A stretch of DNA of 64,000 nucleotides from Setoptus koraiensis (lineage: Eukaryota > Animalia > Arthropoda): the NCBI GenBank assembly GCA_048013815.1, contig CM106585.1, positions 19,282,001-19,346,000 on the forward strand, written 5' to 3'. A program made the position numbers and the translations under genes. This document shows, in pieces, positions 25,531-36,908 of this stretch (position 1 is the stretch's first letter; every line of letters begins with the position of its first letter). The notes below the pieces were generated by a model, which saw only the letters and a list, made by a program, of their open reading frames with translations, had not been told where the DNA came from and did no database searches.

Positions 25531-28500
25531 TTAAACAATGGTCTCTTTGATTACGTTAGCTGTATGGGAAGTGTGGTTTGTCATAGGAGTCATTTCGGGC
25601 GCTTTTGTTTGTTGTTGTGGTCGATCAATTGCCATTTTTGTCCTGTTGATCGTTGTTTCAGCACTCTTACTGTTTGTTGTTTTATCCGATATCAATGTTG
25701 GATCGTTAGCGCCACCACCTACAAGCTGTTCTTGAGCAACTAGGTTTATTTGACTCTGATCCGCATTGTTAGGTGGTAAAGGGGGCGCTACAACAAATGT
25801 CCGTTTCTCGGTAGCCTGCTGAGAATCACCACCTTGTTGATGTTTGTGACGATCGTCATTATTGGCCCCCTGCTGTTCCGGTGGTTGATCTCTGTCACTG
25901 TCGTAATCCTCTTGCTCTGTGTGTATGTTACCTCGGCCATAGCTTATAACAAAGTCATCCGGATTCGTGGTATCTTTTACATTCTTTGGTAGGTCGCGAT
26001 GAATGTAGGCAAAACTTTTTTGAGATTTCTTTGGTTTTATGTGTGCCGGTAAATTGGCCTCAGCTGGATTGTAATCGGGATCTGAATCTGGGTTATCGTC
26101 ATCTAGCTCTCCCAGTTCGTCTTTATTGCCGTGTTTTAGCTTTCTTGATTTCCTGCTACTCGCCGCTCTTCGTCTTCCATTGTCCTGGCGTCGACCAGCC
26201 GCTCTCCTGTTGGCTGCCGGAGTGTCGTCTTCATCGGCGTCGTCGTCATCGCTGGCGTAGGCATGAGTAGAGCCGGGCCTCAACGATTTCATTTGTTTGG
26301 ACGCCTCACTTAGTTGCGGTCTCTCTTTAGTATGCTCAAATTTAAAAGATTTGCCATATCTAGGGGGCCTATAAGGAACTTCCGGTTGCTGGTTTTGTTG
26401 TGGTTGATACCTGTCATAATTAACTCCATGATTAGGCGCCCGATTGGAGTCCGATTGATGATGCGAGCCTCCGTTATACATTCTTCGGTTCATTGCAGCG
26501 TGATTGGGGTAGTTGCCATTGCCATTGCGGTCTCTTGGAGCTTCAAAACCGTTGCGCCTTCCAGCCATTTGGGCTCTGCTATCTGGTTGATTCACTTGTG
26601 GTTGTCGGGAGTTCATTCCTATATTTGTTCTCATATGATTTTGTTGATTTTCGTTCCTTCTAGCAGCCCTCAGTCTGGCTTCTTCTTCGTCGGGATCTTC
26701 TTCGTCGATATCACGATCTTCGTCGGCCACTCTCAATCTGTTGTTGTTATTATTGTACAATTGCCCTTGTCTCCTTTGAGCTTGTTGCTGTTGTTGGGCA
26801 TAGTTGGAATATTGTAATGATGGTGATTTTCTCATTGGTTGTCGTGGTTTATTTTGTTGCACAACTTGTTGCGTATCTGAATAATCTCCATCTTCGTCCG
26901 CGTCATCTGGATCAATTCTTGTGTTGAGCCTCGAAGCGGCACCTTGTTGTCTATTATTGATAGGTCTTTGATTGTTGTTGCGTCTCTTCTTTGGTTGCAC
27001 TTCGTCGGGATCATCTTCACCGCTCGTTTCCGAATGTTGAACGCGTTTCTTTGGATTCTGTTTGCCAGATTTACTTGGTTTGACCTCCATGAGAGAATCA
27101 TCCTCGTCGTCACCATTAATATCAGGATCTTGACCGTTCTTGCTTTGATAAGTCAAAGTGTGATAGGGATTATCCTCGCTAGGTGGACTATAGATCTTCT
27201 CTGCAACAATTTCGTCCTTTTTGCTGCTAGCATAAGCCATCACATCATTGTTATTATTATTAATGATATTGCTAGTCACTTGTCCAGATAATAATGGCAT
27301 AGTGGCGACATTGGTGGTAGCCGGGAGATGATGATTGGCTCGCATGGTTGACGGTTTCAAAGTCATCAAATCACTGTTGGCCATCAGTTGATTATTGTGC
27401 ATGAGGGGCCCACGATGACTTGGATGTTGGTGGTTTTGTGTAGCCGACATAGGCGGTGCTTGCAGTCTAGGTGGCTGAGGCAGTCTCTGCTGGAAAGCCA
27501 GAGGTTTGGGGCCCTTCTGAAGATGTTGTTGATGCTGCTGTTGTTGTTGTTGTTGAATTTGTTGTTGCTGCTGCAGTTGTTGCTGTTGTTGGTGGTGCTG
27601 ATGCTGCTGTTGTTGTTGTTGCTGCTGCTGCAGTTGTTGCTGCTGCTGTTGCTGTTGAATTTGTTGCTGCTGCTGCAGTTGTTGCTGATTATGGAGATTC
27701 CTTTGCTGCTGGCGATATTGTTGTGTAGTCTGGCCGGCAACCAGTCGTTGTCTCGTGCCAGGAAACGCCACATCCTCGGCGATTGGCATCCTTTCGGTGA
27801 CTTTCTCAGAATTTCGAGGCCTCTCAGAAGTGTGAGGGTTGCGAGCTTGCCTTGGACGCGTCGCCATTGAAGCCATTTGGGCAGGCGGGGGCATGATCAG
27901 GGGTCCAGATCGTCGCGCGTAGGTCAGTTCGTTATTTGGCGTCTGTTTATCCAGCATGGGAGGAGCGGACAGTTGTCTCCGATTGTTGTTTTGACTCTTG
28001 ATATTGTTGGTTGCCGCTAGATCCAGATTATTATTATTATCATCGTCTTTTTTTGCTTGTTGTTCGTGTCCACTAGACGACGCTTCTTTGTTGCCATCAG
28101 GCTGTCTAACTTGTTCGTTGATATTAGATGATTGGCTTACTGTTGTTGATTGTGGTGCTTTTGTTTTACTGCCGGATGAGGAGTCTTGATCATTGGGAAA
28201 ATGACACTCTTTTGTCATAACAACACTAGTTATCTTCCTACTGTTGATAAGATTTTTGTCGTTTGCGTCGGTGGATCGTCTTCGGCGACGAAACGATCCA
28301 TAACCGGTCGTTTGGTATTTGTTGTTTGCGCCCGCTCGGCCAAACTGTCCACTATTTGCCGACGGTACACCCAATCCGTTTGTGGGCATCTCTAGCACTT
28401 CTTTGACAACCGTCTTGCAGCCTTTCTGTTGCATCGTGTTGGGATCTATTTCAATGCTGGGCATCTCAAAGGAAGGACTGTGATAGTCTCTTTCTTGACT

Positions 28501-31500
28501 CGAGGCCCCACTCTGATTGAATGGTTCGTCGTCGGGATCAAAAGCGGCCCCCTCATTTTCATCGGCGTCCGCTTCGCCATCTGCATCAGCGTCCGACTCT
28601 TCGGGATCAACGCCCGATTCTTCGCCGTCCGGTTCGGTGGAGTCCTCATTCGATTCGGAGGCGGACGATTCTGGCTCGTCATCCAAATTGATATCGTCGT
28701 CCTTGGAGGCACTTGTACGTCTGCCTTCCGAGGCGGCCGTGTCCAGTGTGTCTGGCTGAGATTTTTTAGCTTGTGTCAACTGTGGAGAGAGGCGCAAATT
28801 ACTCACATAATTGCCATTAGCTGATTTGCTCAACAACCTAGTGCTATTTTTGTTGTTGCGATTGTTATCCATGTTTAACAAATTACTGTTACCCCTGGAA
28901 ACAATATTGGCCTCAACATGATTATTTTGATGCGGGTCCCAGTTGCCGGGCGACACTGTGTTAGTTTTTTGATTGGTCAGTTTTGCCGCAGTCGGTTGGC
29001 CAGACAAACTAACAGATTTGGGCCCTCTGTTATTAGTTGAGTTTTTGAGAGACAAACGGTCCGACGATTCTAGTCCATTCATGACAATAAATTTGTCTAT
29101 TTGATTGGAGTTATCCAATGAGCGCTTGCTCAAAGTATGCCCATTGGGTGAAACGTTGAGTCTTCGACCGTTATTACTGGCGTCAAAGCCAATATTGTCA
29201 TAGTCAGGAGTCGCAGTTGTGGCCTCTGTTGCAGGACGGACGTTTGTCATTGTGTTGATCGTCATTGGAAAATTCAGAAATTTAGGCGAATCGTCCACGT
29301 CATTATTAGTATTCTCAGGTAAATTGTTGTTGCGATTGTTGCTGATCATTGTGAACGACATTGTGTTGCGTCTTGGCGGTTGCACTGTTGGTTGGGGCGC
29401 GTTAGTGTGAAAAGTTGCCGGTCGCACTTGTGGCCTATCAACAAATATAGGCATCTCTGTTGATGTTGAGCCCAGTAAATCAGTGTCAGGTACTAGAAAA
29501 TTGTTTGTTGAAATCATTTGACCAAAGTCTCTGGCCGACATAATAGCTGGCTTGAGGCCGGCTAGTCCACTTGTGTCTATCAAGACCTGATTAACAACAG
29601 GCGATTGTCGACTTTTAGGACCGCCATTGGATACTATTTCTCGTAGTATATTCTTAACTAACGATGGCCTATCTCTATCGTGCCCATACGGTTGTGATGT
29701 CTTTGTTTGAATAATTGCAAACGTCTTTTGTTGGATCTCATCAGCAGGCAGTTGCATACTATCCACGTGTTGTTGTACCTGTTCCATTGTTGTTGATTTC
29801 GGTGGTGTGATTACTGTCATTGAAATCTGCTTGAAGTCGCCCGGCTGATTTTGGGTCATGTTGGAGGCCATCATGAGGACCATCGCATCTTCTTGTTCGT
29901 CCTCTTGATTGCTGGTGGGCGACACTGGACCCTTGTCGAGATCAGTCTTGTTGATCTGTTGTTGTTGTTGCTGCTGCTGTTGTTCCATGAAGTGCATCTT
30001 GAAGGCATCGGTTGAGGCTTGAATCATCTTCATAACCGGATGGTCTAACATTGCTTGTGTTGTCTCATTGATAGTTTCACTTGGTTTTGTTGGCATCACC
30101 TGAATTATCATACGGCCATCGCTTTGTTGTGACACAACAGTCATTTGTTGCGGTGCTACTGGCGACAAATCTTGCTTGTCCGTTTGTTGTTGTTGTTGCT
30201 GGTCTGTAGATGTTGTCTGCTTGGTGTTTTGTTCGCAATCATTAGCCGACTGAGTTGTTTGTTTCGTCGAGGACGACAAAGATGACAAAGGTATCATATC
30301 GAATGGCAGTGTGTTGTTGATTAGTTTGTTGCTCCTATTGACCGGCTTTCGAATGTCCGCACTGCGTCTAGTGAACTGAGCTATATTTGAATCAAATATG
30401 TCCCCTCCATCTGGTGTGTTCGAGTTGCGATTCTCCAATTTAGCAAGCTTCTTTTCAGAGGACAAGGTACCCTGCAATTGTATCGGGAAGTGCATTTGGT
30501 CGCCATCTTGGTTTTTCATATTCACTATCATTTGAATTGGTGGTCTTATCAGATTTGGATCGACACCGTTCTTGAGACTGGCAGTGATATTGCTCAAATT
30601 AAAAGATTGTTGCTTGTTTGTATGGTCAACTAATCGTGTTCTCTTGTCATCATCACTATCACTATTCCTGGTTCCCTCATCCCTACTGTTTTCATTCACC
30701 TCATTGTTGCTGTCATGCAACATCATCAGCATGTTCTTTTTCATTTCCTGGGTCAGCTTCAATGGTTTCATTAAAGGTGGCGGTGGTGACGAGGGGATAG
30801 GCGATATTCTTGGTTGTTGTTGTTGCTGCTGCTGTTGGTGAGGCTGATCGTGGAACCTCATGTTAACGCTTATTTGCTGCTGATCGAACGTAGATTGTTG
30901 ATTGGGATGTTGATTATCACTATGTTGTCGGGTATGATGATCGTTATGATGTTGAGTATGGCGATCATCATGAGGTTGAGTATGATGATCATCATGATGT
31001 TGAGTATGATGATCATCATGATGTTGAGTATGATGATCATCGTGGCGATGGTAATTATCGTCATGGTGGTCTTGGTGGTGCTGGTGGTGATGATGAAAAT
31101 CGTCGCTGGTTTGGTTGTGAGTTTGATTAAAGTGACAGTCTTCATCGAAGCAATCTTTCGTTTGTGAATCATGCTGATGATAGCTAGTAGTGTGATGATC
31201 AAGCTTGGGCTTATTGTCGTCCTGCTGATGAGGGTATTTTGTGGTGGATTTGGTTTGTTCGCCATTGTACGATGATATTGGTGGTCTGTCAAACTCATTA
31301 GGTCGATGATCTTGACTGTAAGCTGAGGCCACTGACGAATAAAATGCCACAGGCTTTTGGGTTTTCGTGGTTTGCTGGTGATGGTGATTACTATTGATTG
31401 GACGAGACGACTGATGCTGCTGATACTGAGCTGCTGATAATGGTGGCTCGCTGTCAACACCGCCAACCTGTTGTTGCTGTTGTTGATAGGATACAGTGGC

Positions 31501-32124
31501 GTACATTGGCACCTGATTGAGATCCTGGCCAACTTGTTGTTGCTGTTCCACAGCAAATTGATTAATACGTGGATCATCATTAGTGTCATGATGTTGACCA
31601 AAAACAGCATTCTCAACCAGAGGGGCTCCATTGTGCGTATGGGCACTCGAAATGTTATCGTGATCTGTTGTTGATGATGCTCTGCGCTCGAAGTGATCAT
31701 GCTGATCTGGCGAATGTTGCTCAGCGCGTTTTATTGACGGAATTGAACGATTTCTGACATTTGATCTGTTTCTGCCAACATATTCAAGTTTGAATTTGCT
31801 ACCATTGTCGCTGTTGTAGTTTGTTTTGTTATTTTGGCCAGTCCCTTCTAATTGGTGGTGTTTTGAAAGTAATGCAGCGCCATTATTTGATAATGTAGAC
31901 CTGAAACTGTTAGCAATTGGTGACGATATCATGACACGATGATTTGTTACGCCATTAATTATATCAACAGGCTCATTAGATAGTTCGGGTTTGGCTGCAT
32001 GACCCGAGGTGGGCACAGATGAGGATGAGTGTGCGCTCTGATATATGGCAAATGCTGGCGAGATTAACAAGATTATGCTAGCGATTGTGCTAAACACAAA
32101 ACTTTGTTTTGCATTGAAGCACAT
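25531..32124 (-). CDS. Very large secreted low-complexity (Q/N/H/D-rich) protein, ~2197 aa, single coding exon
   Basis: 6.6-kb open frame. ATG 32124 is followed by signal-like FVFSTIASIILLISPAFA. Contains multibasic sites (LSKRS, RRRRRS) and no recognised domain. Confidence 0.85.
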   Translation of the reverse strand: MCFNAKQSFVFSTIASIILLISPAFAIYQSAHSSSSVPTSGHAAKPELSNEPVDIINGVTNHRVMISSPIANSFRSTLSNNGAALLSKHHQLEGTGQNNKTNYNSDNGSKFKLEYVGRNRSNVRNRSIPSIKRAEQHSPDQHDHFERRASSTTDHDNISSAHTHNGAPLVENAVFGQHHDTNDDPRINQFAVEQQQQVGQDLNQVPMYATVSYQQQQQQVGGVDSEPPLSAAQYQQHQSSRPINSNHHHQQTTKTQKPVAFYSSVASAYSQDHRPNEFDRPPISSYNGEQTKSTTKYPHQQDDNKPKLDHHTTSYHQHDSQTKDCFDEDCHFNQTHNQTSDDFHHHHQHHQDHHDDNYHRHDDHHTQHHDDHHTQHHDDHHTQPHDDRHTQHHNDHHTRQHSDNQHPNQQSTFDQQQISVNMRFHDQPHQQQQQQQQPRISPIPSSPPPPLMKPLKLTQEMKKNMLMMLHDSNNEVNENSRDEGTRNSDSDDDKRTRLVDHTNKQQSFNLSNITASLKNGVDPNLIRPPIQMIVNMKNQDGDQMHFPIQLQGTLSSEKKLAKLENRNSNTPDGGDIFDSNIAQFTRRSADIRKPVNRSNKLINNTLPFDMIPLSSLSSSTKQTTQSANDCEQNTKQTTSTDQQQQQQTDKQDLSPVAPQQMTVVSQQSDGRMIIQVMPTKPSETINETTQAMLDHPVMKMIQASTDAFKMHFMEQQQQQQQQQINKTDLDKGPVSPTSNQEDEQEDAMVLMMASNMTQNQPGDFKQISMTVITPPKSTTMEQVQQHVDSMQLPADEIQQKTFAIIQTKTSQPYGHDRDRPSLVKNILREIVSNGGPKSRQSPVVNQVLIDTSGLAGLKPAIMSARDFGQMISTNNFLVPDTDLLGSTSTEMPIFVDRPQVRPATFHTNAPQPTVQPPRRNTMSFTMISNNRNNNLPENTNNDVDDSPKFLNFPMTINTMTNVRPATEATTATPDYDNIGFDASNNGRRLNVSPNGHTLSKRSLDNSNQIDKFIVMNGLESSDRLSLKNSTNNRGPKSVSLSGQPTAAKLTNQKTNTVSPGNWDPHQNNHVEANIVSRGNSNLLNMDNNRNNKNSTRLLSKSANGNYVSNLRLSPQLTQAKKSQPDTLDTAASEGRRTSASKDDDINLDDEPESSASESNEDSTEPDGEESGVDPEESDADADGEADADENEGAAFDPDDEPFNQSGASSQERDYHSPSFEMPSIEIDPNTMQQKGCKTVVKEVLEMPTNGLGVPSANSGQFGRAGANNKYQTTGYGSFRRRRRSTDANDKNLINSRKITSVVMTKECHFPNDQDSSSGSKTKAPQSTTVSQSSNINEQVRQPDGNKEASSSGHEQQAKKDDDNNNNLDLAATNNIKSQNNNRRQLSAPPMLDKQTPNNELTYARRSGPLIMPPPAQMASMATRPRQARNPHTSERPRNSEKVTERMPIAEDVAFPGTRQRLVAGQTTQQYRQQQRNLHNQQQLQQQQQIQQQQQQQQLQQQQQQQQQHQHHQQQQQLQQQQQIQQQQQQQHQQHLQKGPKPLAFQQRLPQPPRLQAPPMSATQNHQHPSHRGPLMHNNQLMANSDLMTLKPSTMRANHHLPATTNVATMPLLSGQVTSNIINNNNNDVMAYASSKKDEIVAEKIYSPPSEDNPYHTLTYQSKNGQDPDINGDDEDDSLMEVKPSKSGKQNPKKRVQHSETSGEDDPDEVQPKKRRNNNQRPINNRQQGAASRLNTRIDPDDADEDGDYSDTQQVVQQNKPRQPMRKSPSLQYSNYAQQQQQAQRRQGQLYNNNNNRLRVADEDRDIDEEDPDEEEARLRAARRNENQQNHMRTNIGMNSRQPQVNQPDSRAQMAGRRNGFEAPRDRNGNGNYPNHAAMNRRMYNGGSHHQSDSNRAPNHGVNYDRYQPQQNQQPEVPYRPPRYGKSFKFEHTKERPQLSEASKQMKSLRPGSTHAYASDDDDADEDDTPAANRRAAGRRQDNGRRRAASSRKSRKLKHGNKDELGELDDDNPDSDPDYNPAEANLPAHIKPKKSQKSFAYIHRDLPKNVKDTTNPDDFVISYGRGNIHTEQEDYDSDRDQPPEQQGANNDDRHKHQQGGDSQQATEKRTFVVAPPLPPNNADQSQINLVAQEQLVGGGANDPTLISDKTTNSKSAETTINRTKMAIDRPQQQTKAPEMTPMTNHTSHTANVIKETIV
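30933..31043 (-). repeat. 24-bp coding tandem repeat (HDDHHTQH, ~4.6 copies)
   Basis: Units start at 30933, 30957, 30981, 31005 and 31029 on the plus strand. Confidence 0.9.
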
Positions 32125-32768
32125 AGTTGATTGAGACAAGATATTGTTGTTTCCGGTTATTGTCGTGTTTGATTGTTATATTTGAAAGACGATGATCAGT
32201 TGTCTCCATTCAACACTGGCCATTGCCGTGTGACTTACCTTATGAGATGCATCATGAGTGCTGTTTGATGTTTGCTGATGTATTTTGATGCTGGCCGATC
32301 AGATCGGAAGAACAGATAATTGAGTTTTGCAATAAATTATGTTAATATTACTATACTATGCAGTGGGCTGTTTCTTAAATTATATGAATTTTATTGATAA
32401 TAACAATATAATTGCTATTACATAATAGTTTATAGAGTAACATTGATGACAATTATCTTGATACATGATGCTGATTGTGATATGCTGCTGATATATCAGA
32501 TGAGCACTTGTTGACACTAGATAGATATGATGGTATCAAATGTATAATATCTCATACAGGTAGAAAGGAAATATTATTACTATTGATTGTCGGTGATTTA
32601 TGGTTGACTAATTCAATCAAACAGAGTAAGATTTCTGCTACCGACACACCAATTGGCTCTACCGTAAAACCGAATTAAATCACCTTATCTCACCTCACCT
32701 CACTTCACTTCACTGCACTTCACTTTATGCCGGTACGATCCGCTTCATTTTACTTCACTTCTCCTTGT

Positions 32769-33397
32769 TTCTCTTCTTTCCACTTGACTTCGCTTCGCTT
32801 TGATCTGCTCTAGACATAATTTTACCTCACTGTGAGGAAGCTAACTAAGTGTTAATGGTACTCCATTAAAGTCGACCGCCTGAATCATCTCCAATCACCA
32901 AACTTGTCACTAGTGCTCTAATTCTAATCACTTTGATGTGCACAACTACTACTAGGTCAGTGAGGAAGATTATAATGGTTCAAACGGTGCAATTTGACGA
33001 CATGTTGTTGTGTCTGGATAATAATACTTCAGCAGTTCGACAATGCGAACAATGTGTGTGTGTTCTCTCATCAACACTCAACATCTATTAATTGTTTGTT
33101 CACCCTGTTCTAGACAAGATCCATCCAACTACTGAAGTATTATTATCCAGACACAACAACATGTTGTCACATTGCACCGTTTGAACCATTATAATCTTCC
33201 TCACTGACCTAGCAGTAGTTGTGCACTTCTCAAAGTGATGAGAATTAGAGCACTAGTGACAAGTTTGGTGATTGGAGATGATTCAGGCGGTCGACTTTAA
33301 TGGAGTACCATTAACACTTAGTTAGCTTCCTCACAGTGAGGTAAAATTATGTCTAGAGCAGATCAAAGCGAAGCGAAGTCAAGTGGAAAGAAGAGAA
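32769..33397. repeat. Long inverted repeat (269/271-bp arms, 89-nt spacer)
   Basis: 32769-33037 is the reverse complement of 33127-33397. The outer 157 bp are identical; the inner part has 5 substitutions and one substitution plus 2-nt indel. Confidence 0.97.
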
Positions 33398-33434
33398 CCA
33401 CTCGATCATTGTTGATAATTGATCACTAAACTTT

Positions 33435-34106
33435 TCAATGATGAAACTTTAATGATGAAACTTGATATAATGCATTCGATACAATTTTTATCAATGCCTC
33501 AACGCTTTGAGCTAGTTTATCATAATTATTATCACTCTTTGTTGTTGTTAATGTTGTTTGTTTCAATTCCTTCTTGTAAATGTTGTCACTAAAAATAATA
33601 GTATTAGATAATGCATCTTTAAGATCTTCCAAGTTCTTTTTGTAAATGTTGTCACTAATAATAATAATATTAGATAATGCATCTTTAAGACCTTCCAACT
33701 TCTTTTTGTAACACAAATAACTCTTGTGCCTAGTGGATATAGTATCTAGTGCAGAGGAGACTAACTCTAGAGCTTCGTTCGAGCTTTTTTCCGCTTGTAT
33801 CTGCGAAATTAAATCTTCAATTTTGAGCTCTTCTTCTTCGCGAATCCTTAGCAATGTATCCAGATCGCTCTCAATAATTTCAGACTTGTCGCTTTTTTCC
33901 TTGAATATTGCTTGTAGTTCGTTCAAGTCATCTGTTGCCGTCAAGCCGGGATTCTTCTTTGTCAACAATGTTGACTCCTTTAGAAGATTGATGAATCGCC
34001 GACATAGTGACCCATGTCGAGGATGATAAATGAGGCCTCTCAGATGGGTCTCATTCATGTTAGTCAGGCCTAGATCTTTTTGCATCCATAAAGTTAATTC
34101 ATCCAT
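33435..34106 (-). CDS. Uncharacterised coiled-coil protein, 223 aa
   Basis: Single ORF with ATG in AGAAATGG context, heptad-like E/K/L-rich middle and an internal 22-aa duplication. Confidence 0.72.
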   Translation of the reverse strand: MDELTLWMQKDLGLTNMNETHLRGLIYHPRHGSLCRRFINLLKESTLLTKKNPGLTATDDLNELQAIFKEKSDKSEIIESDLDTLLRIREEEELKIEDLISQIQAEKSSNEALELVSSALDTISTRHKSYLCYKKKLEGLKDALSNIIIISDNIYKKNLEDLKDALSNTIIFSDNIYKKELKQTTLTTTKSDNNYDKLAQSVEALIKIVSNALYQVSSLKFHH

Positions 34107-34234
34107 TTCTTTAACAATATTATTTTGGTTTATCTTGGGTTATAATTGGAGAGCAACTAGTCAAGATTTATCTATAGTAACATCATGAAATCTAATAGCA
34201 ACAGTGATAATAATAATAATATTAATAATAGCGC

Positions 34235-34549
34235 TTGAAGTGGGACAACATGTGGGAAAAGCGGTGTTGTCTCGGCGATCGTGGGGCTGATACTTTCCAC
34301 AACTTTAGGTGCAAAAGAGTATAGTGACCGTAGGGTATCACTCCTCCCTCATGCTCCCACCAAGCAGGAGCCTCCTCTCTCGCTACTCCTGCGGGGAGTG
34401 TGCAAGTTGCACTCCTCATTTCTCATAGCCTTCAGATGCAATTGAGGAGTGTGGGAAAACAGCGACGGGAGACGGTTCTCACGGGAGATCTCTCCCAACC
34501 TAGTTTCAAATTTCCCGGTGAGTGCTGCTTTTGGACTGTCGCGCTTCAA
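34235..34549 (+). ncRNA. Unclassified structured RNA candidate (~315 nt)
   Basis: GC-richer island between AT-rich flanks. The ends pair (34235-47 with 34537-49; 34257-68 with 34521-32, four G-U) and there are several internal hairpins. Most wobble pairs work only on the plus strand. Confidence 0.5.
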
Positions 34550-34686: not shown

Positions 34687-36405
34687 ATGGATATGGAGCC
34701 CTTGGAGGATTCTACCATACCTGGTAAACAGCATCTTCGCGACGCGCTCACCAACTGCTCCGATCCACTGAGGACAATAGAGGAATTTCAAGTCGAGAAT
34801 GGTATTCTTTTGCCATCGCTCAAGCCAATGTTACCCTTGCTAGATCTTCACGGTGTGAGGAGACTGGAATTCCATCAATCTGTCCTGGAAGAGCTTAAAG
34901 AAAAATTAAAAATACAAACAGAGCGATTAGGTAAATCGGATAGTAAACATGATCACAGGAAATTGCAGGAACTCCTCGTAAGAAGCTTCAGGTTTATCAA
35001 AATACCTACCCTACAATCAGTTGTTATGGCTGTACTCAGAAACGTCAGTAACTTAGATGGGAAAATTCTCAATATGCTAGTGTCGGACAATAATATTTAC
35101 AACGTTTGCGATGTTAGTGTTAAAAGACAAATCTGGCTGGAGCACCAGAGTCTGTTTGGTGATGAGGTCTCGCCTCTTCTACAACAATACATACAAGACA
35201 AAGAACATCTCGTATTTAATCATTCGGAAACTAGTAGCATCTTCTTTAGTCAAACTCCGAAACAACGACGCCAAAGTATATTGGTCCAGAAACTTGTCGA
35301 AATGGTTGGCGACAATGTACTCCTCTATGATACAATTGTACAATTTCTTAGGACGTTATTCTTAAAAACAAAAAATGTTCATTATTGTACTTTGCGAGTG
35401 GAACTTCTCATGGCACTCCACGATAAAGATGTGCAAGAGATTACAACTATGGATCAGACTCACAAATTTGTTTGGTGCCTTGATGCCTGCATAAGAGAAC
35501 AAGCAGTAGACCCAAAGAGGTCCAGAGAATTGCAAACATTCTTGGAGAGCATAAAACCAGGCCAAGAGCATGTGCTAGCGGATATTTCGATGACATTGTG
35601 TGATCCATATGCAGTGAATTTTTTGGCCTCGTCTTCACTCAAGATAATACAACATTTGATAAACAACGAATCTTTACCCAGGGAACACCCAGTGCTTCTT
35701 TTGATATTGAGAGTTCTCAATTTAGGATTACACTCATGGGACATTATTAATTCCTATGTTTACCGAGAGCCGAAGCTTGAAGTTAGACTAATAACGAAAT
35801 TCATGCCGGTCATGATGTCCCTCATGACGGATGATCTTATTCGTGGATTGAATACCAAGATGCCTGCTGACAATCGTGAATCTGCCATATCTGTGATTGA
35901 ACATTCGGGACCACCGCCAGAAACATTTCAGAAATATATTGAAAAAGATAGACTCGCAGCCATTTTAGCGATTGGCTACGTTATAAATTTAGTTTGTCAG
36001 TCAAAAGACAAGCAGGCAATCATGCGAATATTACCGGCTTTATCGTCATCTGCAGGAAACAAAGCCCTTGATGATCATATGTTGCACACTCTAGTATGTG
36101 GGCTAGTGGCGATGTCTGATAATTTTTCCGATTATGACTTTGCCACTGTAGTGTTTGACGAATTTTTATTGGCCAACATAAGATACGCCAATGTGGCCAG
36201 TCATCTAATGAAATTGTTGTTTTACGTGAAAGAGCATCTGCCCACCACTAAGTTGGACAACATCACTTCCTTTTTGCGATCCCTTGCAAAACTTATGAAC
36301 CCAGTGGGTTCACTTCGGATAAGTGAATTACTTGATCTGATAAAAAGTTCCATAGATAACAGAGGCGAAGAAGAAGAGTCGGAAGAGGAGGACGACGATG
36401 CGTAA
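34687..36405 (+). CDS. NELFB: Negative elongation factor B (COBRA1), 572 aa, intronless
   Basis: LRDALTNCSDPLRTIEEFQVENGILLPSLKPMLPLLDLHG and HYCTLRVELLMALHD match NELF-B. Confidence 0.96.
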   Translation: MDMEPLEDSTIPGKQHLRDALTNCSDPLRTIEEFQVENGILLPSLKPMLPLLDLHGVRRLEFHQSVLEELKEKLKIQTERLGKSDSKHDHRKLQELLVRSFRFIKIPTLQSVVMAVLRNVSNLDGKILNMLVSDNNIYNVCDVSVKRQIWLEHQSLFGDEVSPLLQQYIQDKEHLVFNHSETSSIFFSQTPKQRRQSILVQKLVEMVGDNVLLYDTIVQFLRTLFLKTKNVHYCTLRVELLMALHDKDVQEITTMDQTHKFVWCLDACIREQAVDPKRSRELQTFLESIKPGQEHVLADISMTLCDPYAVNFLASSSLKIIQHLINNESLPREHPVLLLILRVLNLGLHSWDIINSYVYREPKLEVRLITKFMPVMMSLMTDDLIRGLNTKMPADNRESAISVIEHSGPPPETFQKYIEKDRLAAILAIGYVINLVCQSKDKQAIMRILPALSSSAGNKALDDHMLHTLVCGLVAMSDNFSDYDFATVVFDEFLLANIRYANVASHLMKLLFYVKEHLPTTKLDNITSFLRSLAKLMNPVGSLRISELLDLIKSSIDNRGEEEESEEEDDDA

Positions 36406-36449
36406 AAATTAAAAATGTGGTCACGTGTATATATTCTTGCTTTTTTGTT

Positions 36450-36908
36450 TCATACAGCCTCTATCTGAGGCCTTTCTTTCTTTATTAAACAATCAACACA
36501 GTTTAGTGTGAAACTAGACTCGTCTAGTAGGCAATGACTATTGACAGCGCAAATGTAATGATACTTTCGTCTACAACGTTTCCCCACACAACCTATGGTG
36601 GCTCCGGTAGTTTTGCACGCGGCACATTTGCGACTCAAGGAATCTCTAATCACTTCTTCCATGGCTCTTATTTTGTTGCCCACTAAGTGCACGCCATCTG
36701 ACCAAATGAGACAGTCTTCATGTATCCATATCTCTTTGCCGGAAGACTTTGGTTGATATTTAGCGTCTTCTGCCGGCGGCGAGAAATCAATAACATACGG
36801 TCCAAAGAGATCTCCTAGTCGTCTGTGGTGTGACATTTTGTGACAAAGTATACAAAGCCAATCATTTTTGTTCTCGTGATGAGAACTTGTGACAGATTGG
36901 GATGCCAT
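36450..36908 (-). CDS. Extended PHD finger protein (TCF20/RAI1-like C-terminal ePHD), 152 aa as seen
   Basis: CILC...LGDLFGPY...WIHEDCLIWSDGV...CAACKTTGATIGC...C...YHYIC. A possible acceptor at ~36920 means upstream exons are not excluded. Confidence 0.82.
   Translation of the reverse strand: MASQSVTSSHHENKNDWLCILCHKMSHHRRLGDLFGPYVIDFSPPAEDAKYQPKSSGKEIWIHEDCLIWSDGVHLVGNKIRAMEEVIRDSLSRKCAACKTTGATIGCVGKRCRRKYHYICAVNSHCLLDESSFTLNCVDCLIKKERPQIEAV

Follow-up and report, generated by a model that had tools for sequence, protein, structure and literature searches.

Gene content and synteny at the locus

The window analyzed here, that is, the entire stretch of 64,000 nt of DNA under study, belongs to one of the two chromosomes of the mite Setoptus koraiensis (Phytoptidae). 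The chromosome-level assembly of this species has an N50 of 24.53 Mb, and the text of the paper describing it mentions no RNA-seq (PMC11920263). Altogether, the two pieces of the genome, 24,221,962 and 24,533,333 bases in length, add up to 48.76 Mb. Within the window, an inverted repeat with a total length of 629 bp (32769-33397) is located in the 1.3-kb spacer that separates a gene for a 223-aa protein from a giant open reading frame (ORF), both of which are encoded on the minus strand. The repeat is surrounded by the following features:

25531-32124, minus strand: giant ORF, 2197 aa from its first ATG (32124), without a Pfam family
32390-32395, minus strand: AATAAA, the first canonical one on the gene strand, beyond the entire repeat
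33296-33301, minus strand: ATTAAA inside the right (first-transcribed) arm of the repeat, 135 nt past the stop codon of the 223-aa gene
33398-33434, minus strand: gap of 37 nt that separates the repeat from the stop codon of the 223-aa gene
33435-34106, minus strand: 223-aa gene, coiled-coil protein without a Pfam family, TGA stop codon at 33435-33437
33448, minus strand: ATTAAA, 13 nt before the stop codon of the 223-aa gene
34687-36405, plus strand: NELF-B (COBRA1) gene, E value of 1.7e-155, used as the synteny anchor

An earlier sequence-only reading of the window had placed the repeat 37 bp after the stop codon of the 223-aa gene and upstream of the giant gene. Both statements are correct, and the distance to the first ATG of the giant ORF is 642 bp. 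The giant ORF is intronless and has a signal-peptide-like start, followed by a remainder rich in Q, N, S, D, P, and H, with 0.3% Cys and no Trp; the product looks like a giant disordered secreted protein. For the 223-aa protein, no convincing family was found in Pfam at E values of up to 5, and a search of the ESM Atlas with its 318-aa orthologue from another eriophyoid (see below) retrieved only generic coiled-coil look-alikes. The gene contains a 66-bp tandem duplication (33561-33692, 89% identical) that repeats a 22-residue segment of the coiled coil. On the other side, NELF-B is followed by a convergent PHD-like gene of 152 aa, and the stop codons of the two genes are only 45 bp apart (36405-36450). 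Thus, the 3′ UTRs of this genome have to be either very short or overlapping.

The conserved NELF-B gene allowed us to compare this gene neighborhood with that of a relative. The protein is 98% identical to P0001 and 82% identical to the best named relative, that of Fragariocoptes setiger (P0002), while the identity with other mites is about 57-61%. A scan of metagenomes with an alignment of eriophyoid NELF-B proteins yielded the loci L016 (77% identity, on a 56-kb contig) and L004 (68%). L016 stems from another eriophyoid and has three genes in the same order as the window: the counterpart of the 223-aa gene, an orthologue of 318 aa, then NELF-B, and then the PHD-like gene. The orthologue is 37% identical to the 223-aa protein over the first 93 residues only (E value of 2e-18), and the 223-aa protein is about 95 aa shorter. 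Past the 318-aa gene, L016 lacks an inverted repeat and continues with a spacer of 140 bp, an ORF of 303 aa, and Vac14. In S. koraiensis, a homologue of the 303-aa ORF is found 1.5 Mb away, and Vac14 is encoded on the other chromosome, where it occurs in two tandem copies (C2:7943845-7950058) that are each about 49% identical to the Vac14 of L016. Because the downstream neighbors differ, gene order is broken at the position of the repeat when compared with the L016 species. No DNA similarity was detected between the intergenic repeat region and the L016 locus. The repeat is absent from L016, a distant species with a different gene order on that side, the distance being too large for timing either event.

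Anatomy of the inverted repeat

Global alignment of the left side of the repeat with the reverse complement of the right side revealed two near-perfect arms around a short loop. Together with a tandem repeat that crosses the left boundary, the parts of the locus are:

32681-32800, plus strand: decayed (TCACT)n pentanucleotide tract, which crosses from the left flank to the left arm in one 5-nt register
32769-33039: left arm, 271 bp, the putative parent, with the pentamer tract in phase over its outer boundary
33040-33124: loop (spacer), 85 nt, with a short (GT)n run
33125-33397: right arm, 273 bp, the putative flipped and derived copy, with a 2-bp indel at 33230-33231 and a purine-rich outer end that stops abruptly at 33397

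A repeat-finding scan reported the same structure as two adjoining pairs of arms, 32766-32936/33230-33400 (171 nt, 99%) and 32935-33040/33124-33229 (106 nt, 94%). No other long inverted repeat exists in the window. The scan and the alignment agree with the sequence-only reading that a near-perfect inverted repeat occupies 32769-33397. The layout that it had proposed could be retained, while the dimensions had to be corrected from arms of 269/271 bp and a spacer of 89 nt to arms of 271/273 bp and a loop of 85 nt. In the same manner, the reported identity of the outer 157 bp was borne out, and in place of six differences in the inner part there are seven substitutions (32926, 32937, 32951, 32994, 32999, 33033, and 33038) and the 2-bp indel (33230-33231). 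All eight differences are confined to the inner 114 of the 271 positions, a distribution that has a probability of 0.0008 under a uniform process. The inner parts of the arms have thus diverged by 6%, apart from the indel. At the outer junction, there is a microhomology of 2-3 nt.

The two boundaries of the repeat differ from each other. The (TCACT)n tract starts about 90 bp outside of the repeat (Tandem Repeats Finder rows 32680-32725), and all positions of the motif across the left boundary are congruent modulo 5, an agreement in register that, taken by itself, has a probability of about one in five by chance. On the plus strand, pyrimidines make up a fraction of 0.75 of the left flank and 0.81 of the outer part of the left arm. 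At the right boundary, the mirrored purine-rich end (0.81) halts exactly at 33397, and the adjoining sequence has a purine fraction of 0.41 and is unrelated. Since the tract is in phase over the left boundary only, the left arm can be regarded as the parent and the right arm as its flipped, inserted copy. From this anatomy, the left arm is probably the original. As expected of a local fold-back duplication with conversion between its arms, there are exactly two adjacent inverted copies, one of which is continuous with its flank.

To define the copy number, the genome was searched with an arm, with the whole repeat plus its flanks, and with a 90-nt piece, at E values of up to 10. In the 48.7 Mb, the arm sequence is confined to this single locus. 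The search has a lower limit, as the 90-nt query retrieved both arms and zero chance matches, so that matches of about 20 nt escape it. Within the window, the repeat and the remaining sequence have no k-mers of at least 15 nt in common. The trans target or further copies that the sequence-only reading had envisaged as the outcome of such an arm search were not found at E values of up to 10, only the two arms themselves. Neither is there a target-site duplication, and the flanks differ from each other. The arms contain only ORFs of at most 52 aa, none of which resembles a transposase. Searches of the repeat region in Rfam (E values of up to 1) and for tRNAs gave no matches. Also, when the region from 32000 to 34300 was searched by tblastn with the 318-aa orthologue, the only significant match was the N-terminus of the 223-aa gene itself, and no coding remnant was found in the arms. 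A spliced plus-strand transcript, which had been suggested on account of a pyrimidine tract in the spacer and a TAG at about 33113, is not supported by any feature found here, and a coding remnant is lacking.

A MITE or Foldback family was therefore rejected because of the single locus, the missing target-site duplication, and the missing transposase remnant, in line with the earlier statement that the repeat is not an obvious MITE. For a solitary relic of a transposable element, either a solo foldback or a MITE-like element, it may be argued that the entire unit consists of an inverted repeat around a short, non-coding center. The same three findings also speak against such a relic, and the in-phase pentamer tract that joins the left arm to its flank would not be expected for an inserted element. 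We regard this explanation as barely credible.

A probable fold-back duplication, with proposed gene conversion and decay

The repeat is not the only local inverted repeat of this chromosome. Five others were examined:

L046: arms of 1107 nt at 99%, extended outward by 231 nt at 94% and by 85 nt at 95%, spacer of 1046 nt
L047: arms of 569 nt at 100% and 160 nt at 95%, spacer of 4065 nt
L052 (1491-1853): arms of 137 nt at 90%, spacer of 89 nt
L053: arms of 106 nt at 82% and 57 nt at 79%, spacer of 310 nt
L054: arms of 113 nt at 88%, spacer of 1 nt

The complementarity of these five repeats is graded, from 100% down to about 80%, and a mosaic of arm identities is common among them. Because the siblings are of graded age and have mosaic arms, a mutational process with partial gene conversion and subsequent decay is favored over selection acting on each hairpin. 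The spacer of L052 (89 nt) is similar in length to the loop described here (85 nt), in two independent fold-backs; this similarity could be due to chance or could reflect a preferred distance of template switching.

We conclude that the locus probably represents a real fold-back duplication of intergenic DNA that is young, occurs only once in the genome, and in which the left arm is the parental one. A fold-back or template switch may have copied about 270 bp of non-coding intergenic DNA in inverted orientation and set the flipped copy at a distance of 85 nt, where it follows the 223-aa gene directly on the 3′ side. Subsequently, the inner 114 bp would have drifted apart, to a divergence of 6% plus the 2-bp indel, and the outer 157 bp would have been re-homogenized, most likely by gene conversion between the arms. 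Such conversion tracts are expected to leave a divergence that is non-uniform along the arms, as is observed here, and the same mosaic is found at two of the sibling loci (L046 and L047). A two-step origin may be an alternative source of the non-uniform divergence. Moreover, the perfect outer 157 bp and the survival of the repeat up to an inner divergence of 6% could alternatively reflect selection for a perfect duplex at the base of the hairpin. In the scenario of duplication and conversion, the locus would be one of a population of fold-backs that are repeatedly produced and then decay in this gall-mite genome. We infer the mechanism of origin, the gene conversion, and the neutrality of the repeat from these features.

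Two further explanations of the repeat have to be weighed against a fold-back duplication. An artefact of assembly or polishing, for example from a long read that was chimeric or contained a missed adapter, or from haplotypes collapsed in a pooled sample, comes to mind because the assembly was produced by Flye, with PacBio CLR reads from a pool of more than 100,000 wild mites (heterozygosity of 1.13%), and was polished with short reads (PMC11920263). However, the sequence on both flanks of the repeat is unique, the repeat lies deep inside of a 24-Mb chromosome, and the inner arms differ by 6% and an indel. The unique flanks and the diverged inner arms also uphold the earlier judgment that the repeat is not a simple fold-back of the assembly. 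Palindromes that arise from missed adapters span whole reads, whereas the arms found here have a length of only 270 bp, and the loop is presumably unlike an adapter sequence. In addition, the existence of older, more diverged fold-backs elsewhere points to a biological process. The coverage of the assembly was about 496x, and the paper text mentions no amplification step (PMC11920263). An artefact thus appears highly improbable.

The duplication might also have created a regulatory module, in which the flipped copy brings along upstream or 3′-end signals. Such a module could separate the two tandem genes as a terminator or an insulator, or could serve as an antisense promoter directed toward the 223-aa gene. 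Each arm contains one inward-reading ATTAAA, and the copy supplies the 223-aa gene with such a motif 135 nt after its stop codon. However, single matches to a hexamer are expected by chance, and the distance of 640-910 bp from the parental arm to the downstream ATG of the giant gene is long for a core promoter in so compact a genome. A function of this kind is, in our opinion, very unlikely.

Potential for hairpin RNA formation and comparison with known systems

Irrespective of its origin, the repeat has the capacity to form a long RNA duplex. The predicted RNA fold is one long stem for either strand, with energies of -513 kcal/mol for the minus strand and -499 kcal/mol for the plus strand, while shuffled sequences reach about -160 kcal/mol (z of about -45). 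With about 270 bp in the stem and 85 nt in the loop, the intramolecular duplex exceeds the 200 bp of double-stranded RNA (dsRNA) that hairpin RNA (hpRNA) loci have at least. The sequence-only reading had predicted about 270 bp of dsRNA upon read-through, and the arms would indeed pair in this way if they are transcribed through. Polymerase read-through from the 223-aa gene would then yield an RNA hairpin of about 270 bp that Dicer-2-like enzymes could cleave. If the ATTAAA at 33296 is used as a poly(A) signal, the transcript of the 223-aa gene would stop before the hairpin is completed, while a transcript terminating at the AATAAA at 32390 would include the full hairpin.

The genome encodes components that could process such an RNA. 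A Dicer-1-like protein of 2134 aa contains platform and PAZ domains (L048:1167-7571). In addition, two Dicer-2-like paralogues of 1737 aa and 1736 aa (L049:1994-7207, at about 6.39 Mb of C2, and L050:1906-7116, at about 23.45 Mb of C2) are 72% identical to each other, and each has a strong helicase domain, two RNase III domains, and one dsRNA-binding domain; no Pfam match to a PAZ or platform domain was obtained for either of them. About 10 ORFs contain a Piwi domain (Argonaute/Piwi). In another eriophyoid, Aculops lycopersici, one full-length Dicer was reported, together with no clear AGO2 or R2D2 and no RdRP, and its siRNA pathway was called absent or non-canonical (PMC7738191). A search of the S. 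koraiensis genome for the RdRP family also gave no match, a weak blank since the control genomes were silent as well. The sole A_deamin ORF of the genome (L051:2781-3719, at about 12.76 Mb of C1) has a length of 312 aa, lacks a dsRNA-binding domain, and looks like ADAT1 rather than ADAR. Thus, ADAR appears to be missing from the genome, and the proposal of the sequence-only reading that the duplex is a substrate of ADAR finds no support in this gene set. Its other proposal, a substrate of the hpRNA/Dicer-2 type, fared better in that two Dicer-2-like proteins and about 10 Piwi-domain genes are encoded, but a second homologous locus that could serve as a trans target was not found.

A functional hpRNA gene, that is, a source of endogenous siRNAs, would require that read-through or a promoter of its own generates the 270-bp hairpin, which would be diced by a Dicer-2-like enzyme and loaded onto an Argonaute. 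Possible targets in this case are transcripts that carry the arms, that is, the 3′ end of the 223-aa mRNA and transcripts from upstream of the giant gene, or a trans target with a short match. The length and near-perfection of the hairpin argue for such a gene, as do its start 37 nt past a stop codon, on the strand of both neighboring genes, the lack of a canonical AATAAA on that strand until the entire repeat has been passed, and the set of two Dicer-2-like, one Dicer-1-like, and about 10 Piwi-domain genes. Furthermore, long dsRNA is diced in spider mites (PMC7796550). However, no homologous target gene was found genome-wide at E values of up to 10, in a search that covers matches longer than about 20 nt. 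The ATTAAA in the first-transcribed arm could end the mRNA early, and a strand bias toward G:U pairs is not seen: of the three transitions between the arms, two give a G:U pair on the minus strand and one does so on the plus strand, which makes this bias uninformative. The repeat is also missing from L016, the one relative locus that has kept the gene pair, and many of the sibling fold-backs look as if they were decaying. Finally, AGO2, R2D2, and RdRP were not reported in the other eriophyoid (PMC7738191), in addition to the RdRP blank in S. koraiensis. Weighing these points, we consider a functional hpRNA gene unlikely. Because no other homologous locus was found, any small RNAs would be limited to cis targets. 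The most far-reaching version of this reading is that the locus is a newborn, cis-acting hairpin-RNA gene, the first one in an eriophyoid mite, whose read-through hairpin would be diced by one of the two Dicer-2-like paralogues and whose siRNAs would dampen the mRNA of the 223-aa gene or transcripts from upstream of the giant secreted-protein gene, and that the fold-backs form a nursery of regulators in a lineage without RdRP and ADAR. We hold this version to be quite unlikely. The repeat is accordingly no more than a putative hairpin-RNA locus, which could fold into a long RNA hairpin.

Considered alone, the locus is a structural variant of an ordinary kind. As a fold-back duplication it is nevertheless clean and datable, the parent and the copy can be told apart, and the process that would have generated it seems to be exceptionally active in this mite, whose genome is very small and streamlined. 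It is also the best-preserved candidate for asking whether eriophyoid mites produce siRNAs from endogenous hairpins, a question that bears on the RNAi-based control of eriophyoid crop pests.

Several known systems have features in common with this locus. MITEs and Foldback transposons share the palindromic overall shape and the lack of coding capacity, but the locus described here is single-copy, has no target-site duplication, and its left arm is continuous with the flank. Inverted repeats in 3′ UTRs, such as the inverted Alu pairs of mammals and the edited hairpins of C. elegans, resemble it in that the repeat follows directly after a stop codon on the strand of the gene. In contrast, those repeats are derived from dispersed elements and act via ADAR and nuclear retention, and no ADAR was found here. 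The hpRNA loci of Drosophila (such as hp-CG4068, hp-CG18854, and hpRNA1, which feed the endo-siRNA pathway of Dicer-2, Loqs-PD, and AGO2) likewise consist of a long inverted repeat, several hundred bp in length, with a short loop, are non-coding and young, and Dicer-2-like enzymes are encoded in S. koraiensis, too. Fly hpRNAs derive from their target genes, whereas for the repeat of this chelicerate no homologous target gene was found at E values of up to 10. A further difference from the Drosophila pathway is that no clear AGO2/R2D2 arm was reported for the eriophyoid A. lycopersici (PMC7738191). A further correspondence is with fold-back (template-switch) inverted duplications and palindromes that undergo conversion between their arms. 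The arms of the S. koraiensis repeat are far shorter than those of the classical sex-chromosome palindromes, and for this repeat the mechanism is a putative one, based on its anatomy; the shared features are two copies of local origin, a short spacer, microhomology, a mosaic of identities along the arms, and siblings of differing age.
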